A stretch of 31,052 nt of DNA, taken from Macrostomum lignano (lineage: Eukaryota). The notes below the pieces were generated by a model. The model saw only the letters and a list, made by a program, of their open reading frames with translations, had not been told where the DNA came from and searched no databases. The translations under genes were made by a program, and so were the position numbers. Positions 1 through 17,862 of this stretch are shown here, in pieces. Every line of letters starts with the position of its first letter. Position 1 is the stretch's first letter. The stretch is taken from the NCBI GenBank assembly GCA_002269645.1, contig NIVC01002134.1, positions 1 to 31,052 on the forward strand, given 5' to 3'.

Positions 1-625
1 CCATCGAGGTAAATTTTTTGCTCGAAAGTATCGTAATAGACGTTCCTTTAACGAGCGGATAAATCGTTCAGCCATGCTTGCCTTGTAATTGCTTTGGCCT
101 AACAAAAAATCGAACTCCTTCCTGTTTCAGCATTTGACGTGTAGCTCTTCGAGAAACTCCATACCAGCATCACCTTGTAAATAAACAGGCTTAAAACCAC
201 TTCGAAAAATCTCTAGTAATACTTGACTAACTTCTGAAGGCTTCTTTGTACGCAATGGTCTTAGTCGTACAACTCTAGTAAAACAGTCGATAAGAACAAG
301 TATGTAACGATAACCTCGATTTTCCGTCTTGTATTGAGGTAAATCTGCCAAATCGATTTGAAACTGAAACTTTGCAACTGGTGGCACACTAATTTTTGGA
401 GTTGGAAAGTTTCGTCGTGTTTTTCGAAATAAATGATGCTCATTTGTTGATCGCACCCAATTATCAACTTCGCGCTTTGCAACTTTGTTCGTAATCTGTG
501 GAAACTTTTTACGTACTTCACGAACAAGTATAGTCTTGTTACCACTAAATGAAGTAGGCCTGTTCAAGTTAAAAAAAGCATCCGTCAAAAAATTCTTCAA
601 TTTCCTTACGCACTCGCTTCATCAT
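1..625 (-). pseudogene. Polinton-type DDE (rve) integrase, three frameshifts, runs off the window edge
   Basis: ORF 127-600 has FQIDLADL (D1) and LQGDAGMEF (D2). The shifted downstream frames read RQMLKQEGVRF and then SNYKASMAERFIRSLKERLLRYFRAKNLPRW (catalytic E). The shifted upstream frame from ATG 625/622 reads MMKRVRKEIEEF. Shifts map to A-runs at 587-592, 154-156 and 104-109. Confidence 0.88.
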
Positions 626-850
626 CAGTTAGATTGATGCTAGTCGTTTGACAGTTGCAACAAAAGAACGAAGCCTCGATCGAATCTCCGTCAGTATCCT
701 CGTTGTGCTCCTTTCCAGAAACGGCACACATTCAGATTTTATGCAAAAAAACTCACAGAGACGAATCAAAAGTTTTTGGAAGATAGATGACATGGTTTGT
801 CTTATTAAACTATATATTTTTCATAAACAAAAAATTAACCTTTTTAAAAA

Positions 851-857
851 GCTTATA
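851..857 (-). promoter_or_regulatory. TATAAGC motif (candidate element late promoter), copy 1
   Basis: GCTTATA on + strand, in the gap between ORF 905-1594 and the small ORF/integrase. Confidence 0.5.
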
Positions 858-904
858 GTGCTCGAATCAATTTTTTAAAACGTAATCTGTAATTTTAAAA
901 CAAC

Positions 905-1594
905 TTAATTCAGTGTTTGATAATTTTCAAACAGACTAAGATCCTCCTTTGCAACAGTTTTTGGAGCAGACATTAGCTCGTTTCGTACATGACGCCCGAT
1001 TTGGTTTGCTGCGATTCCACGTTTTCGAAGAAAGTCTAAAAATGTTTTTAGTCCACTAGGCGGTTGAGTCTCGTGTCGCTTAAGCGGTCTGTCTCGAACA
1101 ACATATTCCATGAGATCTTGTATCTCGGCATCAGTCAAATTAGCCAGCATTGGTTCTGCATTCTTGTCCATGTCCGAAAATAGGTTTTGAGCGAGAGCTT
1201 CGAAACGTGGTAAAAAAACTTTAGGAATTTCCCTTGATTCGCTGGCATATGAACTTCTTACAGTAGTCCCTTTGCGAACAAGTGACAGATTGTCCTCGTC
1301 TCCAGTGCGATAGACTTTGCGCAATTTTAAAAGTTTGTCTTCCAATCTGCTTCGTTTCAATTGAGCTGTGTAATTTGGCTCCTTTTCCATTTCCTTGTCC
1401 AAGTTATCCATTTGGTCTCTCATTTCCACCATATTTTTTGCCAGAGCATCTTGCGGTGCGTCTAAAACTTCAGTTTTTCGAGGTGTCTCAGCAGTTGGTG
1501 ACGATCCTTGCTCTGCACCTTGACATGCAGATTGATACACAGATTCAGGTACTAGATACATTCGTTGAAAACTACTACTCTCGTTAGTTCGCAT
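905..1594 (-). CDS. Polinton hypothetical protein (229 aa, predicted coiled-coil; N-terminal RMYLVPE resembles the KMVLVP motif of Polinton ORFs at this position)
   Basis: Long ORF starting 8 nt after the stop of the upstream core-like ORF; conserved syntenic position; charged helical centre. An alternative start is at 1561. Confidence 0.65.
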   Translation of the reverse strand: MRTNESSSFQRMYLVPESVYQSACQGAEQGSSPTAETPRKTEVLDAPQDALAKNMVEMRDQMDNLDKEMEKEPNYTAQLKRSRLEDKLLKLRKVYRTGDEDNLSLVRKGTTVRSSYASESREIPKVFLPRFEALAQNLFSDMDKNAEPMLANLTDAEIQDLMEYVVRDRPLKRHETQPPSGLKTFLDFLRKRGIAANQIGRHVRNELMSAPKTVAKEDLSLFENYQTLN

Positions 1595-1602
1595 TATTCC
1601 TA

Positions 1603-2031
1603 CTACTTTCGTTGAATTGATCGTATTAAATTCGCTGCTCCCGCGGCGGTACCAACTACTCCAGACGTTATCCCAAGCGCAGTGCTTATAGCAGGTAGAG
1701 CGGCAATAATTGGAGCCAAAAAAGGTAAAAATCCTCCGTGTTGGACAAGTATTTTCCTTTTTGCAGTAATTGGAGTCTTCTGTTCCAAAAGCTGGCGTAT
1801 ATATCTGCGATGCTTCTCAAGTCGTCTTTTGTTACAGTTACTAATTTTAATACGTCCACTAATAATATTAAACAGAAAGTCTACTAGACATCGTATCTCC
1901 GACTCTGAAAGTGTTTGTAAAAAACTTTTTCTCTGCTTTGGATGCTTTAGCCGATAAACAATTTGTAGTAAAAAAGCACACTGACACAATGAGCGAGCAT
2001 TTTGTTTTCCTTTTTCTGTTAGTTCGCTCAT
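1603..2031 (-). CDS. Adintovirus/Polinton virion core-like protein with an adenain-type cleavage site followed by a hydrophobic helix
   Basis: Basic N-terminal half (RCLVDFLFNIISGRI, RRLEKHRRYIR) followed by ILVQHGG/FLPFLAPIIAALPAI, matching the LxQxGG-FLP pattern of Polinton core proteins. ATG at 2031. Confidence 0.75.
   Translation of the reverse strand: MSELTEKGKQNARSLCQCAFLLQIVYRLKHPKQRKSFLQTLSESEIRCLVDFLFNIISGRIKISNCNKRRLEKHRRYIRQLLEQKTPITAKRKILVQHGGFLPFLAPIIAALPAISTALGITSGVVGTAAGAANLIRSIQRK
1684..1690 (-). promoter_or_regulatory. TATAAGC motif, copy 2 (inside the upstream ORF, about 95 nt before ORF 905-1594)
   Basis: GCTTATA at 1684-1690 on + strand. Confidence 0.4.
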
Positions 2032-2075
2032 TCTTAAAAACAAATTCACAAAATTTTCTATTACACAATTAATCT

Positions 2076-2084
2076 TTGCTTATA
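2076..2084 (-). promoter_or_regulatory. TATAAGCAA motif, copy 3
   Basis: Just after the penton stop, 53 nt upstream of ATG 2031. Confidence 0.55.
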
Positions 2085-2086
2085 AA

Positions 2087-3076
2087 TTAGTCCGACCTAT
2101 GTTTAAAATGCAGTACGACAACAACGTGTGCTCCCGGATCAAAATTAAACGGTTTTCCGCGCTGGTCCGATAGTCGAATCGAAATCTCGTGAATTTGTTG
2201 TCGATTTGTTTTCAAGTAGTAGGGTGTTTGCAATGCACTGCTATCGCGTATAAGTTCTCCGTTTTTCTTTTGTTGGAGTTCCACAACTCGAAGCAACGGT
2301 ACTGATGTACTTCCCACTGCTTGATACTCGATTATATCTGTGTAACAGTACATGTAAACCGTTTTACTAGGCATCGGAGAAGGTAGCACAGCATCCAAGT
2401 AGGTTTTGTTAATGCGCCAAACACGATTTCTCAACCAATATTGGTGTACTTTGATGTACACTTCTCCTTCCGTTTTTCGAAGATAGTCTCCATGCGAAAC
2501 AAGTCGTATAGCTTCACCAGGCGATAGAACACAATAAAAAACATAATAGTTCTCAGGTACTAGCGCTAGAGTATTGTCGAGACTTTTTATCAAATCCAAG
2601 TATGAACCATCCGGTGGTTGTACACTACCAGCGGCAGGTTTTGATAATTTTTCCGAGACAAGTCCAGAAAGTTTCTTCCAAGAGTCAAATTTGAAAGCGT
2701 CCATAAATGTAACTGGTAGTTCTAATCCAATAGTTTTTTCGCCTGAATTTCGTAAAAGCCAGGCAAATTTTTCATCTGTACCAGACGGTTGCCAGGAAAC
2801 GTAAGCATCCAAGTCTGCCTCTGCCCAAACACGACCCCAATAGTTTTTCTTTAATCGTATTATTGAGTCAATGTCCGCAAAATATGGAACTTCAAATCGA
2901 CGCTCACGATGAGCATTTGGCGTCGTAATTGCTCCATGGCACAGTAATTCAACTAGTGCAACCTCGAAGAATCCGTTCAATAAATTTATTGGTTCAGTTA
3001 GTCGCACTCGAAATTCATTAGGCGAGTTGGTTTCGTAACTGATATCGTTTGACGGCAAAAAAACGTAAAAACTCAT
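2087..3076 (-). CDS. Minor capsid protein (penton, single jelly-roll) of Polinton/adintovirus
   Basis: N-terminal FYVFLPSN..NSPNEFRVRL..PINL..FEVALVEL and C-terminal MYCYTDII...VPLLRVV...IHEISIRLSDQRGKPF..VVVVLHFK are characteristic of Polinton pentons. ATG at 3076. Confidence 0.85.
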   Translation of the reverse strand: MSFYVFLPSNDISYETNSPNEFRVRLTEPINLLNGFFEVALVELLCHGAITTPNAHRERRFEVPYFADIDSIIRLKKNYWGRVWAEADLDAYVSWQPSGTDEKFAWLLRNSGEKTIGLELPVTFMDAFKFDSWKKLSGLVSEKLSKPAAGSVQPPDGSYLDLIKSLDNTLALVPENYYVFYCVLSPGEAIRLVSHGDYLRKTEGEVYIKVHQYWLRNRVWRINKTYLDAVLPSPMPSKTVYMYCYTDIIEYQAVGSTSVPLLRVVELQQKKNGELIRDSSALQTPYYLKTNRQQIHEISIRLSDQRGKPFNFDPGAHVVVVLHFKHRSD

Positions 3077-3118
3077 TTTGAAATAAAACACAAACTAATA
3101 TTGACAACAGTTTATAAT

Positions 3119-3127
3119 TTGCTTATA
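3119..3127 (-). promoter_or_regulatory. TATAAGCAA motif, copy 4
   Basis: Just after the ATPase stop, 51 nt upstream of the penton ATG 3076. Confidence 0.55.
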
Positions 3128-3133
3128 ATAATA

Positions 3134-3823
3134 TTACACAAACTTTGCATCACATTCACGAGTATAGACAACTTGTTCATCACCAGAAAATATTCCTGTT
3201 CTCAATCGTAAAAAATCTGGTGTCACTTGCCGCAGGTCAATGAATAAATATGAAAAAGGTTTGTTATTTGTTGCGTCTTCATACACATTCACTAGAAACC
3301 TACTATTACGCGGATACATTTGTCGACCGAGATGTTCAACTGTGGTTCGATCGCGCACACTACGAGTTAGACAAATATAACTAGCTGATAAACTTCGCAT
3401 GCGTGCTTCTGGATCAGACTTGTTAAAAAGACCTTGACAAAGGTACAGACAAGTCAAAGGGATATGATGCGCATGCTTTGTAAACATACTAGTAAATTCT
3501 GGCAACTTAGCAATCTCGCTTTGCAAGTCGTCAACAACAACCAAATCGTGTGGTAAAAAACGATTAATCATCTGTGGTGTGAATTCGGGTACAAAAACAA
3601 TAGGGTCAAGACCGCTTTTTTGCCAGCATGTTCTAATTCGTTGTTGATCGTCTGGTTTCAAACTTGATCCATGGCACCAAACAAGACGGCACGGTTTTTT
3701 ATCAAATAATTCTTTTCGTTCAGTCAACAAACGCAACGTCCATTCAGTTTTACCCGAGTTTGAAGGTCCAGCAATAATAAATGTAGAATCGTGAGCTAGT
3801 TGCATATTGTATGGCTGCTGCAT
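3134..3823 (-). CDS. A32/FtsK-family genome-packaging ATPase
   Basis: Walker A IIAGPSNSGKT, Walker B VVVDDLQ, plus RHH-like KHAHH, LCQGLF and YLFIDL..TPDFLRLRT motifs typical of Polinton ATPases. The ATG is 2 nt after the PLA2X stop. Confidence 0.93.
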   Translation of the reverse strand: MQQPYNMQLAHDSTFIIAGPSNSGKTEWTLRLLTERKELFDKKPCRLVWCHGSSLKPDDQQRIRTCWQKSGLDPIVFVPEFTPQMINRFLPHDLVVVDDLQSEIAKLPEFTSMFTKHAHHIPLTCLYLCQGLFNKSDPEARMRSLSASYICLTRSVRDRTTVEHLGRQMYPRNSRFLVNVYEDATNNKPFSYLFIDLRQVTPDFLRLRTGIFSGDEQVVYTRECDAKFV

Positions 3824-3825
3824 TT

Positions 3826-4269
3826 TCAAGCACCAAAGCGTTGCTTAACTTGCATAACCTTGGTAACCAACTTCGCAGCTAGTTTTTCTTTCCAACCAGT
3901 AGACGGATCGTGGGCAATCTCTCGTGCACCAGATTCTAATAGCTTATCAGCTTTTAACCTCTCTTGCACGTCAGAATTTTTATCATAGGCCACGTCGTGA
4001 AGCATGCACAAATTGTCAAGCCGATTAATTCCTCGTTGTCCTTTTGCTAGCCTAGCTTGCAGTTGCGTACCTGGACCACAAAACTGATATCCGCCGGGTA
4101 AATGTGCTTCAAATGGTAAATGATTAATTAACCAATTTACGACACCATAACCTTGTTGCTTTTTATTAATCTTTCTAATAGATTTCTTCTTTTTACGAAT
4201 GCTCTTCTTTTTCTTTTTAAAACCTCGATCTTTCGCTGGAGACATTTTTACAACATATATTTTAGGCAT
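3826..4269 (-). CDS. PLA2X: parvovirus VP1u-like phospholipase A2 domain virion protein
   Basis: LPGGYQFCGPGT Ca-binding loop and GINRLDNLCMLHDVAY with the HD dyad; Lys-rich N-terminus. An alternative start is ATG 4245. Confidence 0.88.
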   Translation of the reverse strand: MPKIYVVKMSPAKDRGFKKKKKSIRKKKKSIRKINKKQQGYGVVNWLINHLPFEAHLPGGYQFCGPGTQLQARLAKGQRGINRLDNLCMLHDVAYDKNSDVQERLKADKLLESGAREIAHDPSTGWKEKLAAKLVTKVMQVKQRFGA

Positions 4270-4281
4270 AAATTTTTAAAA

Positions 4282-4290
4282 TTGCTTATA
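4282..4290 (-). promoter_or_regulatory. TATAAGCAA motif, copy 5
   Basis: In the dUTPase-PLA2X gap; 21 nt upstream of ATG 4269 and 45 nt upstream of ATG 4245. Confidence 0.55.
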
Positions 4291-4341
4291 GTATTTACAA
4301 AGCTCTCGCATAGTGCACCAATCACCAAAGAAAAAAATCAG

Positions 4342-4347
4342 TTTATT
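4342..4347 (-). terminator. Polyadenylation signal for dUTPase
   Basis: AATAAA on the minus strand, 13 nt after the dUTPase stop. Confidence 0.5.
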
Positions 4348-4360
4348 ATTATTATTATAC

Positions 4361-4843
4361 TTATTGGCCAGTGCTGCCAAAGCCGCCAAAGCCGCGCCGC
4401 TTGGTCGGCGGCTCAATCATCCGAATCGAATTGTCTGCTTCAGTCACATAGACTGAAGCAAGCACGGCCTGCTCCAGAACCAGTTGTGCAATACTGAGCC
4501 CGGCATAGTACTCAAAGTCTTCCGGACTGTAATTAAACAAGACTATACAGATTTCACCAGTATAGTCGGGGTCGATTACGCCACCGCCAACAAATAAGCT
4601 GTGCAGAGCCATGCTGGAACGTCCCGCTATCCTGCCATAGGTACCAGGCGGTAAGCGAATTTTGAGTCCGGTTCGCACACTCCGGGACTCGTAGGCCGGA
4701 ATGGTACCATCGACGCCAGCGCAAAGATCATACCCGATCGACCCGACAGTTTTTCGGGTCGGAATCGTTGCCGAATCGTATAGACGTTCAACTAAAAGCT
4801 TACGATCAGTTAGTTGTTGTTGCTGCTGCTGCTCGGGATTCAT
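4361..4843 (-). CDS. dut: Trimeric-type dUTPase
   Basis: All five motifs present: GYDL, IAGRSS, GVIDPDYTG, IAQLV, RRGFGGFGSTG. The likely start is ATG 4843 (MNPEQQQQQQ), preceded by a strong ttttaaactttcag acceptor at 4858. Confidence 0.95.
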   Translation of the reverse strand: MNPEQQQQQQLTDRKLLVERLYDSATIPTRKTVGSIGYDLCAGVDGTIPAYESRSVRTGLKIRLPPGTYGRIAGRSSMALHSLFVGGGVIDPDYTGEICIVLFNYSPEDFEYYAGLSIAQLVLEQAVLASVYVTEADNSIRMIEPPTKRRGFGGFGSTGQ

Positions 4844-5029
4844 GTCGATTCTTGTAGCTGAAAGTTTAAAAAAAAGTTTTTTTTCTTGAAACATGAACGA
4901 TAGCACTACATTTACGTCTACTACAAACACAAGCTTAGTCTTGAGAATCTAACTATAAAAAATATACTTTTTCAAATAATTAAACACAAAAAAGTGCTAA
5001 AATTATAATTTAAACGAATGCCGGTATCA

Positions 5030-5039
5030 TTTATTTATT
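5030..5039 (-). terminator. Tandem polyadenylation signals after polB
   Basis: AATAAATAAA on the minus strand, about 100 nt after the polB stop at 5136. Confidence 0.5.
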
Positions 5040-5135
5040 GTAAATAATGATCAATGAAAAAATTAATGATGGGTTACAGTCTTCTATAGCATGCTATTAC
5101 TTTGTACAACAAAAGAGATCAGAGCATATTGTTAA

Positions 5136-5466
5136 TTAATTAGCCAAGTGCCAGTGTCCAAAGGGTAGCGAATTAATTGAACTTGTCCAGGATCGCTTCG
5201 TATCGAAGAAGCTTAGTGCAAGTTTTCTTTGTTGCATCAAAAAAAACTTTCTGTTTTCGAGAACGAATGGACTGCATGCGCGAAAACACAAGTTGTCGCT
5301 TGTGTAAGACTCTTAAATAGTCTTGATGCTTTAAACTGCTCTGTGCGGCTTTAGAAGCAGTACTGCTCCAGCTTTGCGACCGATTGAGACTGGAACTTTA
5401 AACGATTGCTGCTTAACTAGACCGGACCGGACTGGACCGGACCGGACTGGACCGGACTCCCCGCGC

Positions 5467-5498
<32 letters not shown>

Positions 5499-6230
5499 AC
5501 CACCACCGCCGCCACCACCACCACCACCACCGCCACCACCACCACTGCCGCCGCCCGCCCCCACACCACCGTGGGACGTATTTGTTGACAGTGTGCTTGC
5601 ATGGCTTTTGCGATAAACGCAGAGCATCAAGTCTAGCTGCTCGATTGCTCTATATTGCCAATTACTACCTCGAGATTGAAAATTGTCAATTTTTATTAAC
5701 AACTGATTAATAACGCGTGCGAACCAGTCATTGTAGGCCTCGGGAGATAACAGCATGTCACTGTTTGCAATCGTCTCATCAAATGATATTGTCGCAATGT
5801 TGGTATTAAAATAGACCGAAATGATCTCTTCGCTGCTCGAGCCATCGTTGTCGTCTGCTGCTGTTTTCGGTCGAAATAGTGTCACTTTCAAGTGAAAGCA
5901 GACTCTTATTAATAAACTGGGTGAGCCAATTTTTTCCAATATTTTAAATATTGGTTCTCTTAAAGACGCAATCAACTCGCCAGGAAGTAACTCGCCAGAG
6001 CTGTTGCCTTGTTGCTCAAGAGTGGGAGTAAATTCGACAAAATTTACCCGACCACGATGAGCTGACTCGCGCAAAGCGATGGACCACCCATCTGGTGGGT
6101 TTTCGATCAGGTTTTGCAGCGATCCGGTCAGTAATCGTTGCGGTGAAAAACAAGCACCATGCGAGTGAGCATGCAGCTCGGCTTGATTACTGAACTTTTT
6201 TCTGCAGATTTGGCATTGTGCACGCGGCAT
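5136..6230 (-). pseudogene. polB: Protein-primed family B DNA polymerase remnant: N-terminal region and extreme C-terminus only, catalytic core missing
   Basis: N-terminal part has a C2H2 finger (CQICRKKF..LHAHSH), ESAHRGR and IDNFQSRGSNWQYRAIEQLDL. The C-terminal part, read across frameshifts, is QDYLRVL..RMQSIRSRKQKVFLMQQRKLALSFFDTKRSWTSSINSLPFGHW*, matching the Polinton PolB tail K.ALS.FDDKR...LP.GH. No exonuclease or YxDTDS motifs are present. Confidence 0.82.
5420..5570. repeat. GC-rich microsatellite: 8x GACCG/GACTG pentamer followed by a (CCG/CCA)n tract
   Basis: Directly visible; translates as poly-Gly in the polB frame. Confidence 0.95.
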
Positions 6231-6453
6231 TGTGTGCACCTAGCTCGACAACGAGCGTATCGAGCATAATATTAATAGATGATCCGGTTTGTCATTTGCG
6301 GCTGTAAGAAAAATGATGATTTGGTTAGTTATAGGTATAGCTGACACGTTTACTATTAGAGAAAACAATTGGTAAATAAATAAAAAAAGACAAAATGTTT
6401 GTAAAAGAATGCATCGCAACTGCGATTTGACAGCAATTGTTTACTTGTTAAGT

Positions 6454-7011
6454 TTAGTTATTAACAGAGATTAAAAAATCCTTGACATGGTTAAGAATAT
6501 TATTCAATTCATGAGTGTTTTGAACGCCCATAATAACAAACTTTTTCGAAAAAAATATGTTACAAAAAAGCCTTGGTTTTGATGCTGATCTAACAGAAAC
6601 TGCTTGTGGGAAATTTTCTGCATCGTATCCAACCAGATAATTCGAATAGTAGCCTGCATATCTTTTTAGACTAGAGAAACCGAATTTTGGCCAAAGATGA
6701 CCAATAAAGCCGACATAGGTACTGCTCTGAATTTTTACTGAATCAAAATCTACACAATTAATAGTGTCGTTGATAAATCGTAAAACTGAGACTATCTGAG
6801 AATTTGATTTACAGCCATATATAGTTAGTTTTCCTGCTGGATAAAGTTGGATTTTAGCATTTGAATAAATTGTCTTTAGCATTGTTGGTCGGCTTAGGAA
6901 TAGTTTGCAAAACCGGTTTCTGGTCTGTAGCTTCTGTTTGGTCTGCTTTAAATCAAATTTTTCAAACGGGTGCAGCTTCAGACTCGCAGTAACTATTAAT
7001 AGGACAAGTCG
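6454..7011 (-). CDS. Divergent TATA-binding-protein-like protein (both TBP repeats); 5' end lacks an in-frame ATG and begins at a splice acceptor
   Basis: The frame is open from 7011 to 6454 (185 aa plus stop), longer than the tracked ORF. It aligns by eye to the TBP core: IVTASLKL..FDLK ~ NIVATVTL..LDLK; RNRFCKL ~ PKRFAAV; IQLYPAGKLTIYGCKS ~ ALIFASGKMVVTGAKS; VKIQS ~ FKIQN; YDAENFP ~ YEPELFP; KPRLFCNIFFSKKFVIMGVQ ~ KPKIVLLIFVSGKIVLTGAK. Confidence 0.85.
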   Translation of the reverse strand, partial: RLVLLIVTASLKLHPFEKFDLKQTKQKLQTRNRFCKLFLSRPTMLKTIYSNAKIQLYPAGKLTIYGCKSNSQIVSVLRFINDTINCVDFDSVKIQSSTYVGFIGHLWPKFGFSSLKRYAGYYSNYLVGYDAENFPQAVSVRSASKPRLFCNIFFSKKFVIMGVQNTHELNNILNHVKDFLISVNN

Positions 7012-7220
7012 CTAAAACGGAAAATAAATAATAAGAAAAGTTAAACATGACTATACTATCGTAAATTCTAATATTAAATTACAAAACCTGGTTAGCGTAC
7101 AAGGAGTAGCAAACAATGTTTTGAGCTTTTCCCTAAAAAATAATATTTCCCTAGCCAAAAATTTGATAAATATAGTGGAATAAGTTAGTTAAAATTGGAT
7201 AAAATTAGTCAAAAATTTTG

Positions 7221-8419
7221 TTACTCATCATCAGAGCTGCTGTACGAGTCGTCCGATGAAGACACGCTAGCTGTAGTAGCGTCCGCAGCAGCACGCTTTA
7301 AAAATGCTGTCTCCTTGGACGCTACCCTGGTTCCAGAGGCAGGTGTACTCACCAAGATCTTTGCTGGTGGAGCCTCCACCCAGTCTGTGCCATCTGCACC
7401 AGCTTCGGCAGAATTGTTTTGCTGTTTTGCACCGCTGCGTTTTCGAACTTGCTTTTTAGGCGGTGGTTCAATAGAGGCTGGCGCTGCATTCGATGTAGTC
7501 GACTTCTTCGATACGGTGGTGGTAGACCGACGCTTTGCAGGTGACTTGGCAGGTGTCACCTGGCTTGAATTCTGCAGGCTTTGTTCATTTGCTTCTTCTT
7601 GCTCACAGGTAGATGTTGGGGACGGACTCCTGCTTCTAATTGCTGACTTGGTCGCGGGTAGGTGTGCAAGCACTCCCTTGAACATGTCGAGGCGCTGCAA
7701 CATGTTGTCGGAAGATTCTATGAGTGTCAGAGAGCGCACAGCGAATGTAATGCGCCAGACGAGGCAGCCTTTTGGACAATACAAGCTCGTTGCTTGCACT
7801 GTCATTTGGTAGGTACCGCTGACACCTTTGAAATCGGAAATGGACACCTCCTTCCCGTGTGGATGATCGTTGCTGATCCTGATTGTGGCACAAGGGTAAG
7901 CAGGCTTTATAGCCAGCCATTGTTGAGGCACAAACTCGAGGACGTCGTTAGCATGCTGATGAGCTGGTTTTGTTAGTCGTGCCAAGGGTCGAGCATCTTG
8001 AATCTCGTTCAACTTGACCGATAGACCTTTTTCGACTTGACTGCAAAACATTATATAAATTATGAATATAGTTTCCTAAAATTAATTGTATAAATTTAAT
8101 ATGGTGCTCACCGGAGAGAGTGGAAGAGTTCCTTATCGCAGCTGTCTGGATGAAATTGGACACTTACTGCGTCGCGAGAGTCGTGTCTGCAAGACGGATG
8201 ATCGAGCTCTGGCCTTTCTGCGATTCCACGAAAAAGCTCCATTGGAGCCTTGGTTTGCAATATAATTGGGTACCATTTTGTACACTCGATTGATGGTTTC
8301 CACGCAATAGATCGAAACTGGCAGGACGAACCAGTCGTGGTTGTAGACTGCTCTCCAACGTAAAAAATCGGACTCGAGTCGGAGCGTACAATTGACTCCG
8401 TCTTGATGCAAGCTGCCAT
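7221..8419 (-). CDS. Two-exon orphan gene, 375 aa (exons 8419-8112 and 8040-7221), with a Ser/Lys-rich, acidic low-complexity C-terminal tail
   Basis: A 71-nt AT-rich GTGAGC...TTTTGCAG intron (8111-8041) joins tracked ORFs 8108-8419 and 7221-8051 in phase 2. ATG is in gacATGG context with an upstream TATA box. Confidence 0.75.
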
Positions 8420-8497
8420 GTCTTACAAGCAATTGAATATAGTATTTCTTTTGCTGTAATGATTGAGCTCATGAAAAATTGACTATTTCGGGTCTTG

Positions 8498-8505
8498 TAT
8501 TTATA
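8498..8505 (-). promoter_or_regulatory. Canonical TATA box (TATAAATA) of the 375-aa gene
   Basis: TATTTATA on + strand, about 80 nt upstream of ATG 8419. Confidence 0.55.
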
Positions 8506-9109
8506 GCAAGCATTGCATGCTGTTTGTGAACTAGTAAACAAATTTAATTGTTGCGTGCTGATTAAGACATTGTTGCGTGCCAAAGGTGGCATAAGTTTCT
8601 AGGGTGGGTTGCATGATTAGGTCTAATTTTACGCAAATGTAGGTTGATATTTTATACAATAAAATTAATGAATCTTAGGCACACTAGTTATAAATTTGCA
8701 AGAGTAACACGATGGCAAGCGTTTAATAAGAAGACTGCTGGTTGCTGCTTCATTAGATTGGTTTTGTTCTCAAGTAGAATGTAATTAAAATATTTTGCGA
8801 CTTGAAAAATTAGCAATCTTGGATTTTAGAGTAAAAATAAGCTGCACGCGGTGCTATGAAATTAATTTATTGAAAGTTTTGCTTGCATGTTGGAATTTTT
8901 TAGCTCGCACGGTGACAAGAGATTGCTTGAGTAACCTATATATAGAGTGTTACTTTTCAAACAGAAAAATGTATAGTTGTAACTCAGCTTTTGCAGTCCT
9001 ATATTGAGCAGAAGCTATATAGAGTTACACTATAATGCTGCGACACGCAGCTTGTTGGGACTATAATGACTGCCGCTGCTATAACCGCATGCAGTCAGTG
9101 CAGTTGACA

Positions 9110-9920
9110 CACAAATGCTGTTTGGACTAAGCTAAATTACTGTGTTGAGACAGTTAAGCTGGACCACGGCTAAATCACTATTGATACGGTTAATTGCTAC
9201 TAGACCCATGGCTAAATCACTGTACGTTGAGACGGTTAAGCTGGACCACGACTAAATCGCTGTACGTTGAGACGGTGGTTAAGCTGGACCATGGTTATAA
9301 AACTGGACGGGTGGTTAAGCTGGACGACTACAGCTAAAATTACTGTTGAGTCAGTTATGCTAGACCACAGCAGCCAAATCACAGTTGAGGTAAAGCTGAC
9401 CATAGCTAATTCTCACTGTTGAGACGGGTGCTGCTGCTTGGCTCACAGCTAAATAACTGGACAGTTAAGCTAATCGGACTACAGCTAAATCCCTGTTGAG
9501 ACAGTTGCCTGGACCACAGCTAAAATCACTGTTGAGGCAGTTAAGTCTGGACAACAGCTAAAATTACTGTTGAGACAGTTAAGCCTTGACTATAGCTAAA
9601 TCATCGTTGAGGTAGTTAAGCCTGGACTATAGCTAAATCACTGTTGATGCAGTTTTAAGCTAGACCACAGCTAAATCATACTGCTGAGGCAAAAAAGCCG
9701 GACCACGGCTAAAAACTGTTGGGGCAAAAGCTGGACCACAGCTAAATCATACTGTTGAGGCAAAAGCTGGACCACAGCTAAATCATACTGTTGAGGCAAA
9801 AGCTGGACCACAGCTAAATCATACTGTTGAGGCAAAAGCTGGACCACAGCTAAATCATACTGTTGAGGCAAAAGCTGGACCACAGCTAAATCATACTGTT
9901 GTGGCAAAAGCCAGACCATG
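9110..9920. repeat. 36-bp tandem repeat array (GGCAAAAGCTGGACCACAGCTAAATCATACTGTTGA)
   Basis: Five nearly perfect copies at 9723-9902, progressively degenerate copies leftward to about 9110. Confidence 0.9.
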
Positions 9921-10175
9921 GCTAAAGAAACGTATGAAAAAAAATTATTTGCATGGATTAATAATTTTTGTTTAATGATGACTGTACAAGATATTGACTT
10001 TATATTGAATTAAATAATTTCAATGAATGGTGAATAAAATTGAAAGATTTTTTTAGAATAATGAATTTATAGAGATTATATTATTGATTACAGACTTGTT
10101 TGATATATACTAAAAGAGCAATTACTTGGACACATTGCTGGCAAAATTTTATGAAGAGTTAGAAAAAATGTCTTT

Positions 10176-11037
10176 TTAAGATAGGTCCCAATATTCAAAT
10201 ACTTGAGTTGTATTACAGGTCTTTGCTAATTCTACTTGGTAGAAGCCTGTGCTCATTTGAGAGACTTTTACAGACTTGATGTCCTTCTGTACAATAATTG
10301 GCGAGTTTAGCAGCGGTTGAACTTGGCTAGAAATAGCAATTGATGATGATGGTGTTTCAGTTGCTGTCGTTGGTTTGGTACTTGTAGGCTTACTGCAAGT
10401 TTGCTTTGTTGGGTCATTGTAGCTGGTTGGTGATGGTGGTGGTGGTGCATACTGCAGTTGGTCAGTTGGTCGTGGGTTCGATTGCTGCCTAATTGACTGA
10501 ATAACATCAGTTCTTGTGTAAATGCGATCTAGCTCAGTTGTCTGTCTCTCGACATGAATCGAGGTTACTCTGGCGAGAGATGTAGAATATGATGCTCTTG
10601 CAGCAGAATTGGATGTGGTGGTGTCGTGGCAAATGCGTTTGCACTGATCTGGAGGTGGCCGCGTGAAGAAACCATTCTTGAATGCTATAATAATGGATAA
10701 GATGAGGGAAATTTGGTATAGGTGCATGTATACAATGTATATAGAAACTGAACTAGCAGAGAATCAGTCTAAACAGAAACCGAACTAGCAGACAATCAAT
10801 CTAGAAATTCTGAACTAGCAGAGTATTAGTCTAAACAGAAACCGAACTAGCAGACAATCAATCTAGAGACTGAACAAACAGAGGATCGGTCTAAACAGAA
10901 ACCGAACTAACAATCAATCTAGAAACTAAACTATAGCGAACAGTCAATCTAAAAAAGAAAACTGAACTAGAGTAGGTGATTATCTTACCTTGTTTAACAT
11001 AGCGCTCGGCCAATTCCTGCTGACGTGATCGCTTCAT
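10176..11037 (-). CDS. Two-exon orphan gene, 185 aa (exons 11037-10989 and 10684-10176), Thr/Pro/Ser-rich
   Basis: ATG 11037 (MKRSRQQELAERYVKQ), strong donor AAG|GTAAGA and acceptor ccattattatag join in phase 1 into tracked ORF 10176-10727. A (TA)n TATA-like tract lies at about 11125-11136. Confidence 0.55.
10745..10970. repeat. Degenerate ~60-bp tandem repeats (AGAAACCGAACTAGCAGACAATCAATCT-containing) inside the predicted intron
   Basis: Three to four recurring units are visible. Confidence 0.8.
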
Positions 11038-11447
11038 TTCACTTAAGATGTAAGTATAGTTGAACAAGTAGTATAATGTAAACTTGGTTTAAGTTATTTA
11101 ATATTTTCTGTGTCAGTGTGTTCGTATATATATATAGTATAAAGAAGAAGCATGTTGACGCAGTTGTTGACATAGTATCTGTAAACCATCTGCTCAAGTT
11201 GGTGCAAAAATTCTATAGGCACTCAAGAATAGATCATTTACTATCTTTCTTCAAAAGGGTGATAATATTCACAAGTTTTCAATATTTCAATAACACTTGA
11301 AATGTGTGAATAGCTTTGGAGTAAATTTGTCTTGAATGGAATCCTTTGAAGTGTGTTTGTGTCACCATTGCTAGAATCGGTTACTTGTATTTTGGACAGG
11401 TGGATATGCAATTCGTCTGAATAATCACGTTGCGTAAAAGATATTTA

Positions 11448-11516
11448 GCGTGCACTTGGAATTTCAGACTGCGTGCACATGGAATTTCAGACTGCGTGCA
11501 CATGAAATTTCGGACT
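11448..11516. repeat. Three 23-bp tandem units GCGTGCACATGGAATTTCAGACT (candidate subterminal repeat)
   Basis: Units at 11448, 11471 and 11494. Confidence 0.9.
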
Positions 11517-12064
11517 CTGCCATTTTTTTGGGCCTGTACTTACTATGTATTTCGCCATAAGGAAATCGGCTTTGTGTCAAAAAAACGTATACTACTAGCA
11601 GGATATGGCGGATGCATGTGGGGAGGTGAGCTGGTTTGCCTTTTTCACAGGTCAGTTCAAATCTCCCTGCCGCCTGGTTGAGGGCTTGAATTTTCCGATT
11701 CGAGAACTCTTTGAGAAGCGGCCTAGAGCTGTATAGAGCTCTCCGCTCCGCTGGATGGCAACTTTCCCGTCCCATTTCCATTCCTAGCTTGCCTTCCCAC
11801 CGTTCGTCTTTCCCTTCTCTCCAACGGACTGCTCGTAGCTCCGAAGCGATAATCAGACACAATATGATAGACTACTCAGAGGCAAGACTTTTCTCACAAT
11901 TGCTGTAGAGTCAAGACTTACATTAAAGTGTGTGTAAAGCATTAGCGATCTCTCAAAAGTGTTGTTTTAAGAGGAAAGCACTAACCAATTAGCTTATAGC
12001 AAAGTTGTTTCACCCCCCCCCCCCACAATCTATCTGTGATGACGTCGAAGATTGCTTAGTTATT

Positions 12065-12663
12065 GATAGATTGTCTATGGTTTTGGAGGCAGACAATGGT
12101 AGATTGTGTCTATGGTTTTGGAGGCAGACAATGGTAGATTGTGTCTATGGTTTTGGAGGCAGACAATGGTAGATTGTGTCTACGGTTTTGGAGGCAGACA
12201 ATGGTAGATTGTGTCTACGGTTTTGGAGGCAGACAATGGTAGATTGTGTCTAGGGTTTGGAGAAAGACTATGGTAGATTGTGTCTACGGTTTTGGAGGCA
12301 GACAATGGTAGATTGTGTCTAGGGTTTGGAGAAAGACTATGGTAGATTGTGTCTACGGTTTTGGAGGCAGACAATGTTAGATTGTGTCTAGGGTTTGGAG
12401 AAAGACTATGGTAGATTGTGTCTACGGTTTTGGAGGCAGACAATGTTAGATTGTGTCTACGGTTTTCGAGAAAGACCATGATAGATTGTGTCTACGGTTT
12501 TGGAGGCAGACAATGATAGATTGTGTCTAGAGTTTGGAGAAAGACTATGGTAGGTTTTGTCTATGGTTTTGGAGGCAGACAATGTTAGATTGTATCTAGG
12601 GTTTTCGAAAAAGACAATGATAGATTGTGTCTAGGGTTTTCGAGAAAGACAATGATAGATTGT
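12065..12663. repeat. 35-bp satellite/minisatellite, left array (GGTTTTGGAGGCAGACAATGGTAGATTGTGTCTAC), with a variant unit giving a ~69-bp dimer
   Basis: Roughly 17 tandem units are visible. Confidence 0.95.
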
Positions 12664-12665
12664 TA

Positions 12666-13502
12666 TGTCACGTTATTGGCGTAGTGGCTAGGACCCTTAA
12701 AAGGGCCGTTTAACGGGAATCGTCGTAAGTCGTTGTAGTCCCAAAATGAATCGAAGTCAACTCTTGTAAAGTGGATTGTGTAGCGGAGCACTTGGCGTAT
12801 AAGGGCAGGAAACTGCCGTAGTTAATTTATTTTTGAGATCAATATTCAAACGGGTTAATGTCAATACAGAACTTATCGCACTTTGGGACACTGGCGGCTG
12901 CAACAATGGTTTTAAAGGTAATTTAGAATGACGAAGTCGAGTAGCAGGCGAAGGATACAATGGCGACGCAACGTAGTGAGTGATGGCGATGAGCACAGTG
13001 GAGGCAGTGAGTAGTAAGTAAACAGGCAGATACCTGGTAAGTAACGGTGAGAGTGGCGTTAGCCGTGGCAGTACACAGTGGAGTACGGAGTGTAGACAGG
13101 CTGGCCCAGACAGAGGAGCCGTGGCGAGAGATAAGGAGGCTCGAGGCAGCCAAGAGAGAGAGAAGGAAAACGAGAGCCAGACGCCCGAAGCCAGAAGTGA
13201 GGAGGGGGCCCCAGCCCGCCGCCAGGCGGGGGGTTAATAAAGAGCGCAGAAGGGTTAGCATAAAACACGGAGAGTTTTCATTGGCTGGCGAGAGAACTTG
13301 AAATCATCGATCGTGGTAAAATTTACAGACGAACGCAAGGCCTACCAAATACACAGTGAATTAGCAATTGATACAGATTATTTGCACGCTACTACAAGTA
13401 ATCGTTAAAATAAACTATTGGAGAAACTTAGATGAGACATTGCGAGGGAAACTATAGTCCAACGGCCCTTTTGCGGGACCACCTTAAACTAGCAACGTCA
13501 CA
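12666..13502. mobile_element. 837-bp insertion with TG...CA ends and imperfect inverted termini (solo LTR or non-autonomous TIR element)
   Basis: Interrupts the 35-bp satellite mid-unit. TGTCACGTT versus the reverse complement of AACGTCACA match 8/9. A perfect subterminal inverted 12-mer AAAAGGGCCGTT / AACGGCCCTTTT is present. AATAAA at 13236. No clean TSD. Confidence 0.6.
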
Positions 13503-14180
13503 GTGTCTACGGTTTTCGAGGCAGACAATGGTAGATTGTGCCTATGGTTTTGGAGGCAGACAATGGTAGATTGTGCCTATGGTTTTGGAGGCAGACAATG
13601 TTAGATTGTGTCTACGGTTTTCGAGAAAGACAATGATAGATTGTGTCTACGGTTTTGGAGGCAGACAATGGTAGATTGTGTCTAGAGTTTGGAGAAAGAC
13701 TATGGTAGGTTTTGAAGGCAGACAATGTTAGATTGTATCTAGGGTTTTCGAAAAAGACAATGATAGATTGTGTCTAGGGTTTTCGAGAAAGACAATGATA
13801 GATTGTGTCTACGGTTTTCGAGGCAGACAATGGTAGATTGTGCCTATGGTTTTGGAGGCAGACAATGGTAGATTGTGCCTAGGGTTTTGGAGGCAGACAA
13901 TGGTAGATTGTATCTAGGGTTTGGAGAAAGACAATGGTAGATTGTGCCTATGGTTTTGGAGGCAGACAATGGTAGATTGTGCCTATGGTTTTGGAGGCAG
14001 ACAATGGTAGATTGTGCCTAGGGTTTTGGAGGCAGACAATGGTAGATTGTGCCTAGGGTTTTGGAGGCAGACAATGGTAGATTGTATCTAGGGTTTTGAA
14101 GAAAGACAATGGCAGCTTGTTTCTATGCTTTTGGAGGCAGACAATAGTAGATTATGTCTATGGCTTTGGAGGCAGACAAT
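13503..14180. repeat. 35-bp satellite, right array
   Basis: The same unit resumes immediately after the insertion; roughly 19-20 units. Confidence 0.95.
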
Positions 14181-14990
14181 GAGCCAACGATTGGCGAAGC
14201 CAGAGAGACCAGAGAGATATGTCAGGCCCCTATGACCGGCTGGCGGTCAGCAAAGCTGGTGGGAGGTGCCAGTCGGTCCCGCAAGGCAATGGAGGGGGTG
14301 GGCAGTGTGAAAAGGTGGCTCGTGCAGATGAGTTACACCGCAGAGGAGGTGCGATGGTCGCCTGCAGTGCGCGCGCGGTGTGGGCTATTGTACATTGAGG
14401 GGTGGACAGTGAAAACTCGGACAGCTCGGACAGTGTGTAGCCAGGACAACTCGGCCCAGCTTTCACGGCTGGCGTCCACGACGGCCTTGGGGACTTTACG
14501 AGCGTAAAGCGTAGCACTTTCCTGATCCCAACTTTTGGTGCCGCTGCTGCAGCTGGCGCCTTTACAATACCGAAGTTCGCTAAATCTTTATTCAAAATCT
14601 TACTCAATAAAGGAAGCAAACAAGACTTGAGTTGTTTATCAACTTTTCTTGGAGTACAATGTATTCTTCGATATATTATTCAAAGCAAGTATGTTTTCGA
14701 AATTTATTATATTTGAACATTAAAGTTTATTATAGAAATTTTCATCCACCAAAATTCGCCTCAAAGTCAAAAATTAAACAAACTTAATAGCAGTTTAAAC
14801 GCTTGAAAAAGTTTAGAAAAACGGTATTGGACAGAAATTTAGTTTTTAAAAAAATACATGAGTTCTTCAGTTATTTATATTATTGCAATAAAGACGTTTC
14901 ATTGAAAGCGATAAAAAGTTCAGTAAAGTTAAACAATTCCCAAAGTTAATTCAGTTTTTAAGACCTTTCTTTGCTCTTCTTGTAAAAAAT

Positions 14991-17284: not shown

Positions 17285-17862
17285 CTCTTTAGTAACAACT
17301 ATAGGGTGAAGAATTTCGCTCTGTCTTAGGCAAGGACACTCAACAAAGGAGGTTTCAGCTGCGTTAATATTTAACACAAAATCTCAGTTTGTTTGTTTTA
17401 GCGACTTCTTTTTCGGCCTATACTAATCTGTTCGGTCTTTCTGGCTTCTCTGCTCCTTGCTTCTGAAGCCTGGTACTAGCGTAGTTTAATCTGAATCATC
17501 GTTTTTTTCACAGTTCCCACGATATTTTTCTTTTTATTCGCAGCAGCAACTGCAGCATACGATAGGTCTTAAATACAAATGTAAACCCACTAACGCACAA
17601 GTTGCAAGTGGCTGCGTATTGGCTTTCGTAAGCAACTCTAGTATGCAAGATTTATTATTAGATGGTCTAAAGACTCTGCTTGTAGGCAGTCACGGTGGGA
17701 AAATGCTACAGGCTGAAAAAACTTCAAGACCTTTTTTAACGTATTGTAGCTAAATACTCGTAATTAGCCTGTAAATTATCCATGAGCGAATTAACCTGAT
17801 AAGGAATGTAAAAAATCAAAATGAAAAACAATTAAATCGAAGATATGACTTCTGTACTTTAG

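Follow-up and report, generated by a model that had tools for sequence, protein, structure and literature searches.

Homologues of the TATA-binding protein (TBP) are known from giant viruses and, in heavily disguised form, from herpesviruses. Cellular TBPs (Pfam PF00352; yeast structures 1tbp and 1ytb, E. cuniculi structures 4wzs and 3eik) are built of two tandem alpha/beta repeats, which together form a saddle; animals also have the divergent paralogues TRF2/TLF, characterized by an altered promoter choice. TRF2 has lost the DNA-kinking phenylalanines and does not bind TATA. Among the Nucleocytoviricota, divergent TBP folds are virus-encoded, as in Heterosigma akashiwo virus, Terrestrivirus and the asfarvirus protein B263R, but giant viruses come with a multisubunit RNA polymerase and TFIIB-like factors of their own, their transcription taking place in viral factories or in the cytoplasm.

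The beta- and gamma-herpesviruses, nuclear DNA viruses without an RNA polymerase of their own, encode a TBP mimic (KSHV ORF24, HCMV UL87). In KSHV ORF24, a large protein of several domains, the TBP-like part can be recognised by structure only; the protein binds Pol II directly, not TFIIB. It requires TBP-like phenylalanines and a polar-rich DNA face, drives late promoters with the host Pol II, and recognises a TATA-type box, of non-canonical sequence, which is restricted to late genes (PMC12529657). As to mid-size elements, a gene labelled 'TBP' appears on the maps of non-animal MELD viruses, linear dsDNA elements with an adintovirus-like PolB, published by Starrett et al. 2021 (PMC8502044, Fig. 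5; bioRxiv 10.1101/697771, Figs 5-6); it appears there in figure legends alone, unaccompanied by sequence analysis or by any discussion of residues or promoters, and can be compared by its label only.

Here, we describe a TBP-like gene found in a stretch of 31,052 nucleotides from Macrostomum lignano (contig NIVC01002134.1 of assembly GCA_002269645.1), hereafter the window. The initial annotation of this DNA, made from the sequence, had suggested that such a gene may be undescribed; this was overstated, given the 'TBP' label visible on the MELD virus maps and the known giant-virus TBPs. Because of that label, a TBP in a mid-size element is, as a general idea, not unprecedented.

The TBP-like frame and its fold

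The gene is a stop-to-stop frame of 185 codons on the minus strand (7011-6457, with the stop codon at 6456-6454), containing no internal stops and no frameshifts. It encodes a complete, highly divergent two-repeat TBP fold, as had been proposed from its alignment to both TBP repeats, and profile and structure searches agree in retrieving TBPs. Pfam PF00352 matches two stretches of the frame, with an E value of 2.2e-7 and a score of 31 bits against a gathering cutoff of 22.9. Three relatives, P0002-P0004, also lie above this cutoff, and a fourth, P0005, reaches 22.8. Nine NCBIfam TBP models match the frame as well, every score being under the cutoff of its family. When the PDB was searched with a profile of the five-member family, all 35 sequences found at E<=0.003 were TBPs; positions 9-177 of the profile align to residues 32-191 of the E. 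cuniculi TBP (E 3.1e-7), covering both repeats.

AlphaFold prediction from the single sequence was uninformative (pLDDT 47.5), and the model used was obtained by AlphaFold2 from the alignment of the five sequences (pLDDT 92.1, pTM 0.77). In this model the order S1-H1-S2-S3-S4-S5-H2 occurs twice. Compared to the PDB by Foldseek, it gave 44 matches at E<=0.001, again all TBPs, the best being 2z8u_B (E 4.6e-10, TMq 0.76); TM values to TBPs range from 0.65 to 0.76 over about 187 columns. The best viral structural matches, searched in BFVD, are NCLDV TBP-like proteins, with E values from 1.3e-9 to 1e-6. Sequence identity is low throughout, about 17-23% to cellular TBPs and 8-18% to those of giant viruses. 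BLASTP found no significant match between the two repeats of the window protein; the internal duplication is visible by profile or structure only.

Repeat 1 (residues 1-86, positions 6754..7011, minus strand) contains S1, H1, S2-S5 and H2, as delimited by the secondary structure of the model and by the alignments to yeast and E. cuniculi TBPs, and carries the aromatic positions F38 and Y57. Repeat 2 (residues 87-185, positions 6457..6753, minus strand), delimited by Pfam, the model and the alignment, carries F134, F153, the stirrup D130-A-E132-N133 and M161. The protein consists of a bare TBP core and, differently from cellular TBPs, has no N-terminal tail.

The first in-frame ATG is codon 44. 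An ORF starting there would encode 142 amino acids (6882-6454) and would be without half of repeat 1; in two of the relatives, P0002 and P0004, homologous coding sequence matches the window codons located 5' of this ATG.

The element and its relatives

The window joins the TBP-like gene and its two neighbours to dUTPase, phospholipase A2 (PLA2), pX, ATPase-like and rve genes, all on the minus strand. Directly upstream of the TBP-like gene lies a conserved orphan (7221..8051), for which a length of 375 amino acids had been given initially; the ORF measures 276 amino acids when counted from the ATG, and 284 codons between stops. It features a C-terminal motif, DWVEAPPxKxLVS...SGxR, followed by a Ser/Asp-rich tail, and its homologues occupy the same position in two related loci, L001 and L005. 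The orphan has no match in Pfam or in the PDB, and is therefore not a recognisable TFIIB-like partner.

On the other side, the neighbour originally called polB is an N-terminal fragment of 302 amino acids (5331..6239), which aligns to residues 1-277 of a >649-aa ORF of L002 and L003 containing an Endonuclease_7 motif. The fragment results from one truncation, the rest of the gene being gone, and includes one in-frame expansion of a glycine-codon repeat. An Endonuclease VII domain occurs in Maverick POLBs (PMC5803895), and by its architecture the large ORF would be of the polB type; a polymerase domain is found nowhere in the window. The large ORF of L003 likewise has no PDB match and no match to a Pfam polymerase family, and a six-frame reading of 8076-12899 yielded short ORFs and tandem repeats only, with no hidden polB.

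Further along, the dUTPase gene (4361..4930; PF00692, E 1.8e-29) is followed by a gene for a PLA2 of the parvovirus VP1 type (3826..4269; PF08398, E 3.4e-9), which belongs to the virion module; PLA2 is a hallmark gene of this module in the Alpha adintoviruses (PMC8502044). The next gene (3134..3829) encodes a putative packaging ATPase, with a Walker A motif GPSNSGKT and a Walker B motif LVVVDD read from the sequence; as it gave no significant HMM or PDB match, the assignment is made from these motifs and from position. A 334-aa virion-module gene (2087..3091) has two homologues, P0007 (E 2.7e-12) and P0008 (E 2.5e-9), the former having, in L007, an rve integrase and a DJR-like ORF for neighbours. 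It is followed by a gene for an adenovirus protein X (pX/mu)-like core protein (1603..2049; PF05829, E 2.6e-6, above cutoff), by a 229-aa ORF identified by ORF reading (905..1594), and by a broken integrase gene of the retroviral type (1..857). The latter is frameshifted at least once in its core, where the sequence can be followed in a different frame, is interrupted at least once more in its N-terminal part, and exits the left edge of the window. Its rve match, obtained on a 157-aa piece (E 1.1e-4), is below the Pfam cutoff owing to this fragmentation. Neither capsid (DJR) nor protease genes were recognised in the window, and no long inverted repeats were found within 1-14000, the element running past the left edge. 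A little past the orphan gene, at 9131-9926, short tandem repeats form arrays. This virus-like mobile element, sitting in a eukaryotic chromosome, is a decayed one, Polinton/adintovirus-like in character; its decay, and the missing start codon ahead of repeat 1, had not been noticed in the initial annotation.

Homologues about 40% identical to the TBP-like protein were found on four independent metagenome/SRA contigs, where gene order is shared: L001-L005, from four samples, feature the conserved orphan, the TBP-like gene, in some cases followed by a dNK gene, and the large Endonuclease_7 ORF. The contigs of the relatives are compact and intron-free, with all genes on a single strand, and in them the dNK gene adjoins the TBP-like one. 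Within the family, pN ranges from 0.20 to 0.44 and pS from 0.70 to 0.88 in all pairs, showing, on the evidence of these coding sequences, that the family is under purifying selection.

This conserved synteny in four independent contigs supports the assignment of the gene to a Polinton/adintovirus-like element, not to the host, in agreement with what had been proposed initially. A host gene, or a decaying retrocopy of a host TBP or TRF, might be envisaged merely beside the element, considering that the first 43 codons are without an ATG and that the surrounding element is decayed. However, four contigs of other samples, all of them compact, free of introns and coding on a single strand, carry this gene flanked by these two neighbours; in the window it is placed between two element genes and not at the element's edge. 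Moreover, at 17-23% identity to cellular TBPs, and with pN well below pS within the family, it is far too divergent for a decaying copy of the host TBP. The probability that we assign to a host origin is next to nil, and synteny refutes it for practical purposes.

The family is also very rare: out of some 15 billion proteins, four clusters belong to it. Exact-sequence look-ups of the TBP and PLA2 ORFs of the window matched no record. A word-indexed homologue search gave no matches with the single protein and only known members with the family profile; no relatives were retrieved from IMG/VR and JGI metagenomes scanned with the TBP-like profile, the large ORF and the ATPase as queries. At the top of an exhaustive search stood a 7048-aa protein of Ixodes scapularis, KAM7312507, with 62 matching stretches and an E value of 2e-84. 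It is composed of a 107-aa tandem repeat, each unit of which matches weakly and has no Pfam TBP match, and it was rejected as inflated by repeats.

Whatever the role of the family, the window gene itself could be an inactive remnant inside a dead insertion, and this we regard as fairly likely. The polB-type gene is cut to its first 302 amino acids, the integrase is frameshifted, capsid and protease genes are not seen in the window, and no in-frame ATG precedes repeat 1. Some features point the other way: 185 codons stay open in a stretch of 37.5% G+C, where stops are frequent, and the start of the open frame immediately follows a pyrimidine-rich ...TTTTAG, so that the gene may have a spliced 5' exon. 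Since the element is decayed and there is no start codon ahead of repeat 1, the window copy is probably no longer active.

Residues of the saddle and of the stirrup

Residues were mapped by HMMER alignment to the yeast TBP chain 1tbp_A, yeast numbers being the chain index plus 60. The family alignment contains 39 invariant columns, among them Y57, F134, F153, E132, R141 and G162. All four positions that kink DNA in cellular TBPs are aromatic in the window protein, with F, Y, F and F exactly as first read: F38 corresponds to yeast F99, and is F or Y across the family, while Y57, F134 and F153, corresponding to F116, F190 and F207, are invariant. R141, at the position of yeast R196, is invariant as well, V159 is kept or invariant, and the equivalents of yeast V213 and G216 are kept. 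The family, being element-borne and retaining all four aromatics, differs in both respects from TRF2/TLF.

In contrast with cellular TBPs, the canonical Asn and Thr residues that read bases are absent at all four positions. Yeast T124 is replaced by Y65 (F or L in the relatives), T215 by M161, invariant in the family, and N159 by S96 (T in the relatives). These three replacements are as initially listed; the fourth had been given as N to L, but the N69 position, which is outside the 1tbp_A alignment and was located by extending the E. cuniculi one without gaps, is occupied by I6, still a hydrophobic residue other than Asn. The positions of yeast L114 and L205 are also changed, to Q and N. The pattern of retained kinking aromatics and replaced base-reading residues is real.

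The stirrup contacting TFIIB had been described as acidic. This holds for the window protein, in which yeast E186 and E188 correspond to D130 and E132, and for the E188 position, which is an invariant Glu across the family; it does not hold for the E186 position, which is N or S in the relatives. The position of L189, a further TFIIB contact, is N, S, L or T across the family. The contact triad appears, in sequence, to be partly kept, with E188 conserved and E186 and L189 not, and for this reason recruitment through TFIIB is uncertain.

Such a combination might also be expected of a decoy or competitor, which, rather than activating promoters of the element, would titrate the partners of the host TBP (TFIIB, TFIIA, TAFs, NC2, Mot1) or occupy host TATA boxes. 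Host Pol II/III transcription would be damped or redirected while the element replicates. Some residues of the convex side and of the stirrup are kept, the equivalent of E188 being invariant, and the changes in DNA-reading residues are what would be expected if precise TATA reading were unneeded; the gene, moreover, is in the early block and could be made before the virion genes. However, the four kinking aromatics, R141 and V159 are kept or invariant, which points to selection on DNA binding itself, and the private box upstream of late genes, described below, would be a natural target. We consider a decoy function improbable.

The TATAAGC box and the proposed role

The sequence TATAAGC, extended to TATAAGC(AA) in the first three cases, is found on the minus strand upstream of the PLA2 gene (4284..4290), of the 334-aa gene (3121..3127), of the pX-like gene (2078..2084) and of the integrase gene (851..857). 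A fifth copy (1684..1690, minus strand) falls within the pX-like ORF, with the 229-aa ORF about 90 nt downstream, and may be an internal promoter or a chance occurrence. Over the 8.6 kb of the element, the gene strand has 5 copies against 0.55 expected (P(>=5) about 2e-4), a figure to be read together with those of simulated sequence, where chance brings about 26 other 7-mers, mostly A/T-rich, to the same count. In the one element on which the argument is built, TATAAGC is the only non-homopolymeric 7-mer common to all four virion/integrase spacers, and it occurs in none of the four early ones. It is not enriched in the related loci, whose contigs are either without virion genes or of a more distant lineage. 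In the case of the PLA2 ORF, just 14 nt separate the box from the first ATG, a spacing more in keeping with an initiator-type element than with a TATA box at -30, provided that translation does not start from a later ATG. The distribution of the box, in this sequence, suggests a putative late-promoter factor similar to the herpesvirus vTBP.

Considering all observations jointly, the best explanation, which we hold with moderate confidence, is that the gene encodes a divergent but complete TBP paralogue, a conserved accessory gene of a small Polinton/adintovirus-like clade, which would serve for promoter recognition with the host Pol II. No RNA polymerase of the element's own is found in the sequence seen and, differently from giant viruses, the element shows no polymerase subunit and would have to rely on the host Pol II; a promoter-recognition factor partnering this enzyme would for this reason be the most likely role of the protein. 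Its saddle, while keeping the four aromatics that kink DNA, would read a different box, since the base-reading Asn/Thr positions are replaced and new polar residues (Q55, N151, T63 and T98) are present on the DNA face. The most likely targets would be the element's own genes, the best candidate box being TATAAGC(AA) ahead of the virion-module and integrase genes, and its recognition may provide an early-to-late switch, as in the case of the herpesvirus TBP mimic. DNA binding, target box and contacts with TFIIB or Pol II are all to be taken as predictions; so are the DNA bending, the recruitment of TFIIB/Pol II and the retuned specificity proposed initially, which were deduced from the identity of residues.

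The TBP-like gene sits in the replication, or early, block, between the conserved orphan and the large polB-type gene. This location would suit a role in replication too. By bending A/T-rich DNA at the element termini or origin, the TBP fold could act as a replication accessory, with no part in transcription, much as host factors aid the protein-primed replication of adenovirus; the constant vicinity of nucleotide-metabolism genes (dNK in the relatives) and of the large polB-type ORF, and the tandem-repeat arrays just past the orphan gene, are in line with this possibility. The complete two-repeat architecture, with its conserved stirrup Glu, is instead a signature of transcription-factor TBPs, and to our knowledge no TBP paralogue acts in replication; furthermore, no terminal target site can be named, termini not having been identified in the window. 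A replication accessory seems to us quite improbable.

For the promoter-recognition factor that we favour, the best functional analogy would be the herpesvirus TBP mimic, found, like the present gene, in a DNA genome without its own RNA polymerase, and similar to it in retaining TBP-like aromatics beside polar residues on the DNA face and, if the late-promoter reading holds, in a non-canonical box confined to late genes. The two also differ: in place of a large multidomain protein, the window encodes a bare 185-aa TBP core, scoring above the Pfam TBP threshold and accompanied by no known partner genes. With respect to the MELD virus 'TBP', known here by its label, the present family goes together with a virion module that contains PLA2 and pX and is Alpha-adintovirus-like. 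A more specific proposal, that of a Pol II-dependent, mid-size Polinton/adintovirus-like clade with a re-tuned TBP reading a private late-promoter box, TATAAGCAA, is advanced tentatively, and we regard it as rather doubtful as a whole.

The value of these observations is tempered by the 'TBP' label already present on the published MELD maps and by a function that is here a prediction. Should the specific proposal be true, a TBP reading TATAAGCAA would constitute a self-encoded early-to-late switch, so far found only in herpesviruses, as the TBP mimic, and in giant viruses, and would offer, in minimal natural form, a TBP whose box specificity is altered. A natural TBP re-specified in this way, with kinking residues kept and base-reading ones swapped, would help to explain how the saddle reads sequence. 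Being very rare and unannotated, the family would mark an undescribed adintovirus-like lineage. If the reading is correct, the presence of a 185-residue TBP core in an integrating element of 15-25 kb, dependent on the host Pol II, would mean that mid-size elements can privatise core promoter recognition.

Identity and extent of the TBP-like protein

The 185-codon minus-strand frame at 7011-6457 (stop codon 6456-6454) encodes a TBP, an identification reached by four independent routes, which bear out the two-repeat TBP proposed in the initial annotation. Two stretches of the protein match Pfam PF00352 (E 2.2e-7 and 31 bits, the gathering score being 22.9), and nine NCBIfam archaeal TBP models also match it, all under their own family cutoffs. 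Used alone as a phmmer query against PDB sequences, the window protein retrieved only TBPs, the best being 1mp9 (3e-4), with the E. cuniculi TBP at 5e-3. A profile built from the window protein and its four relatives gave 35 PDB matches at E<=0.003, all of them TBPs, in alignments spanning the two repeats (with E. cuniculi TBP, profile positions 9-177 pair with residues 32-191 at E 3.1e-7). The AlphaFold2 model based on the same five-sequence alignment (mean pLDDT 92.1, pTM 0.77) features the canonical S1-H1-S2-S3-S4-S5-H2 order, twice; all 44 Foldseek matches in the PDB at E<=0.001 are TBPs (best 2z8u_B, E 4.6e-10, TMq 0.76), followed by unrelated folds with TM of about 0.3. Among predicted viral structures, the closest are giant-virus TBP-like proteins, from Heterosigma akashiwo virus and Terrestrivirus, and asfarvirus B263R homologues. 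The single window sequence produced a poor AlphaFold2 model, and BLASTP between the two halves of the protein found no significant similarity of repeat 1 to repeat 2: both results indicate extreme divergence.

When ORFs are listed by start codon, the frame is reduced to 142 aa (6882-6454), no ATG, GTG or TTG being present ahead of codon 44. The preceding 43 codons are nevertheless coding, since they align with the N-terminal parts of the relatives and account in the model for the S1 strand and H1 helix of repeat 1; the frame has no internal break. A pyrimidine-rich ...TTTTAG directly precedes its opening, being at once a stop codon and a plausible splice acceptor; the start codon may either have been lost or lie in an upstream exon. 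The same pyrimidine-rich string is found exactly before two frames, the TBP-like one (7012-7014) and the stop-to-stop frame of the orphan, the conserved gene upstream of it (8076-8078): these may point to splice acceptors and spliced leaders, as in adenoviruses, or be a coincidence.

Relatives, gene order and selection

Searched exhaustively with HMMER, 1.84 billion cluster representatives yielded just four real relatives (P0002-P0005; 39-41% identity, E 1e-32 to 2e-21). They correspond to four clusters in a total of about 15 billion proteins and form a family without annotation, which is absent from the scanned IMG/VR and JGI metagenomes. The top of the HMMER list was taken by an annotated 7048-aa protein of Ixodes scapularis (P0001, KAM7312507.1), rejected as repeat-inflated: it contains about 62 copies of a 107-aa tandem unit, whose weak individual matches sum up, and has no Pfam TBP signal.

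The relatives come from short contigs of two ENA metagenome assemblies and three SRA runs, where genes are compact, intron-free and mostly on a single strand, and tblastx reveals a gene order common to these contigs and the window. Upstream of the TBP-like gene, contigs L001 and L005 carry a homologue of the window orphan (276 aa, 8051-7221, minus strand), sharing the motif DWVEAPPxKxLVS...SGxR and a Ser/Asp-rich tail. Downstream, the relatives feature a deoxynucleoside kinase gene (L001 2026-2490; L002 1356-2012; L003 981-1637; L004 957-1661), followed by a large ORF. In the window no such kinase separates the TBP-like gene from the large-ORF fragment, and a dUTPase is found further along; nucleotide-metabolism genes appear to have been swapped between lineages.

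The large ORF exceeds 649 aa in the relatives, where it is ended by the contig edge; its residues 1-277 align with the 302-aa window ORF (6239-5331, minus strand) at 45% identity, and a Pfam Endonuclease_7 motif lies near residue 600. A pairing of recombination endonuclease VII and PolB2 domains is reported for Maverick POLB proteins (PMC5803895), and the architecture of the large ORF fits polB. As PDB and Pfam searches of the large ORF returned no polymerase match, we call it polB-type, a putative identity. The neighbor initially described as polB is the 302-aa fragment of this ORF. In the window, the polB-type gene has been truncated once, with loss of all beyond the first 300 residues or so, and has undergone one in-frame glycine-repeat expansion. 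A long tract of GGN codons, encoding poly-Gly, is present in the 5331-6239 fragment, and is far shorter in L002 and L003.

The initial annotation had itself raised the possibilities of a host gene lying outside the element and of a decaying retrocopy of host TBP. Both are ruled out by the conserved synteny and by substitution patterns: in all pairs within the family pN (0.20-0.44) is well under pS (0.70-0.88, saturated), the gene having long evolved under purifying selection.

The element copy in the window

All element genes lie on the minus strand. Beyond the polB-type fragment are found the dUTPase (4930-4361; PF00692, 1.8e-29), a parvovirus-type PLA2 (4269-3826; PF08398, 3.4e-9), an ATPase-like ORF with Walker A/B but no HMM match (3829-3134), a 334-aa gene (3091-2087), an adenovirus pX-like gene (2049-1603; PF05829, 2.6e-6), a 229-aa ORF (1594-905) and an rve integrase running past the left window edge. 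For the virion module of Alpha (Mayetiola-class) adintoviruses, PLA2 and pX are hallmark genes (PMC8502044). The homologue of the 334-aa protein, P0007, adjoins an rve integrase and a DJR-like ORF in its contig, L007. A distant relative of the virion module, L006, contains a BIR (inhibitor-of-apoptosis) domain gene at 3679-4149.

The integrase is frameshifted at least once in its core and interrupted at least once more upstream, and the window yielded no recognisable capsid, protease or polymerase domain. Only short ORFs and tandem arrays occupy the region from 8.1 to 12.9 kb. Arrays just past the orphan gene, at 9131-9926 and 10742-10933, have units of 36-40 nt and 32/62 nt, and could represent subterminal element repeats or else satellite DNA of the host. 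Two further arrays of one 35-nt unit, about 0.8 kb apart (12064-12663, 17 copies; 13503-14181, about 20 copies), give rise to spurious repetitive minus-strand ORFs. From about 14 kb, ordinary intron-split host genes are found: exons for septin (15574-15978, 16787-17383) and one for a VWA domain (18993-19643) separate the element from a minus-strand run of about 20 exon-sized ORFs (20500-30850), each with one WSC domain (PF01822 E 1.3e-20 for the single one tested), which together make up a large tandem-WSC host gene. Its decay and the intron-split genes alongside identify the element as an endogenous, defective copy within a eukaryotic chromosome, and the TBP-like copy in the window is probably inactive.

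DNA face, candidate box and proposed role

Residues were mapped through HMMER alignment with chain 1tbp_A of yeast TBP, whose index plus 60 gives the yeast number. The roles of the corresponding yeast residues come from the TBP-TATA and TBP-TFIIB-DNA crystal structures of the 1990s. The pattern originally noted, of retained kink aromatics and replaced base-reading Asn/Thr, is real. The aromatics F99, F116, F190 and F207 correspond to F38 (F or Y in the family), Y57, F134 and F153 (the last three invariant). Among the other positions, T124 becomes Y65 (F or L in relatives), T215 an invariant M161, and N159 S96 (T in relatives), while N69, previously placed on Leu, is matched to I6 when the E. 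cuniculi alignment is extended without gaps, an immaterial difference. V122, V213, R196 and L205 correspond to invariant T63, V159, R141 and N151, and L114 to Q55 (Gln in all five members except P0005, which has Leu). The DNA face has gained polar residues (Q55, N151, T63 and T98).

A complete saddle with the four kink aromatics retained and base-reading residues exchanged is best read as a promoter-recognition factor of altered box preference, which would work with host Pol II; as the element sequence covered contains no RNA polymerase subunit gene, the element must use the host enzyme. The protein may recruit TFIIB: E188 corresponds to an invariant Glu (E132), but E186 (D130; N or S in relatives) and L189 (N133, variable) are not conserved, leaving one of three contact positions conserved family-wide. 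Less probably, the protein may serve as a decoy that binds partners of host TBP, or may bend DNA during replication.

TATAAGC, suggested initially as a probe, proved informative: the gene strand of the 8.6-kb element holds five copies (851-857, 1684-1690, 2078-2084, 3121-3127 and 4284-4290, minus strand) where 0.55 would be expected (P about 2e-4 for at least five copies in first-order Markov simulations). In simulated sequence, however, about 26 7-mers, mostly A/T-rich, attain that number by chance. Four of the five copies lie in the short spacers that immediately precede the PLA2, 334-aa, pX-like and integrase genes, TATAAGC being the sole non-homopolymeric 7-mer that these four spacers have in common. 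Three of these four copies read TATAAGCAA; as a caveat, one box is separated from the first ATG of the ORF it precedes by just 14 nt. The motif is missing from the spacers of the four early genes (orphan, TBP-like, polB-type and dUTPase), and those of the orphan and TBP-like genes feature ordinary TATA-like strings instead. In this one element, the related contigs compared being devoid of the virion module, TATAAGC(AA) is a candidate late-promoter or initiator box. Its location at virion and integrase genes, in contrast to ordinary TATA at the orphan and TBP-like genes, suggests a role of the TBP-like protein in driving late genes through it.

Giant DNA viruses carry TBP homologues as a standard feature, and herpesviruses possess a disguised mimic. 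The closest functional analogue would be this mimic, KSHV ORF24, which requires TBP-like phenylalanines and a polar-rich DNA face, and works together with host Pol II at a late box of non-canonical type (PMC12529657). A full-text literature search for TBP or TATA with Polinton, Maverick, adintovirus or polinton-like returned a sole mention, by Starrett et al.: "TBP" appears in the legend of their Fig. 5, for MELD viruses with adintovirus-like PolB from non-animal datasets (PMC8502044), and also in the Fig. 6 legend of the bioRxiv version, neither version analysing it. The suggestion that TBP in mid-size Polintons might be undescribed is overstated in view of that label, whose gene may or may not be related to the present, unannotated family. 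The TBP-like genes are a real and well-supported family, for which the mechanism proposed here would be an attractive one.
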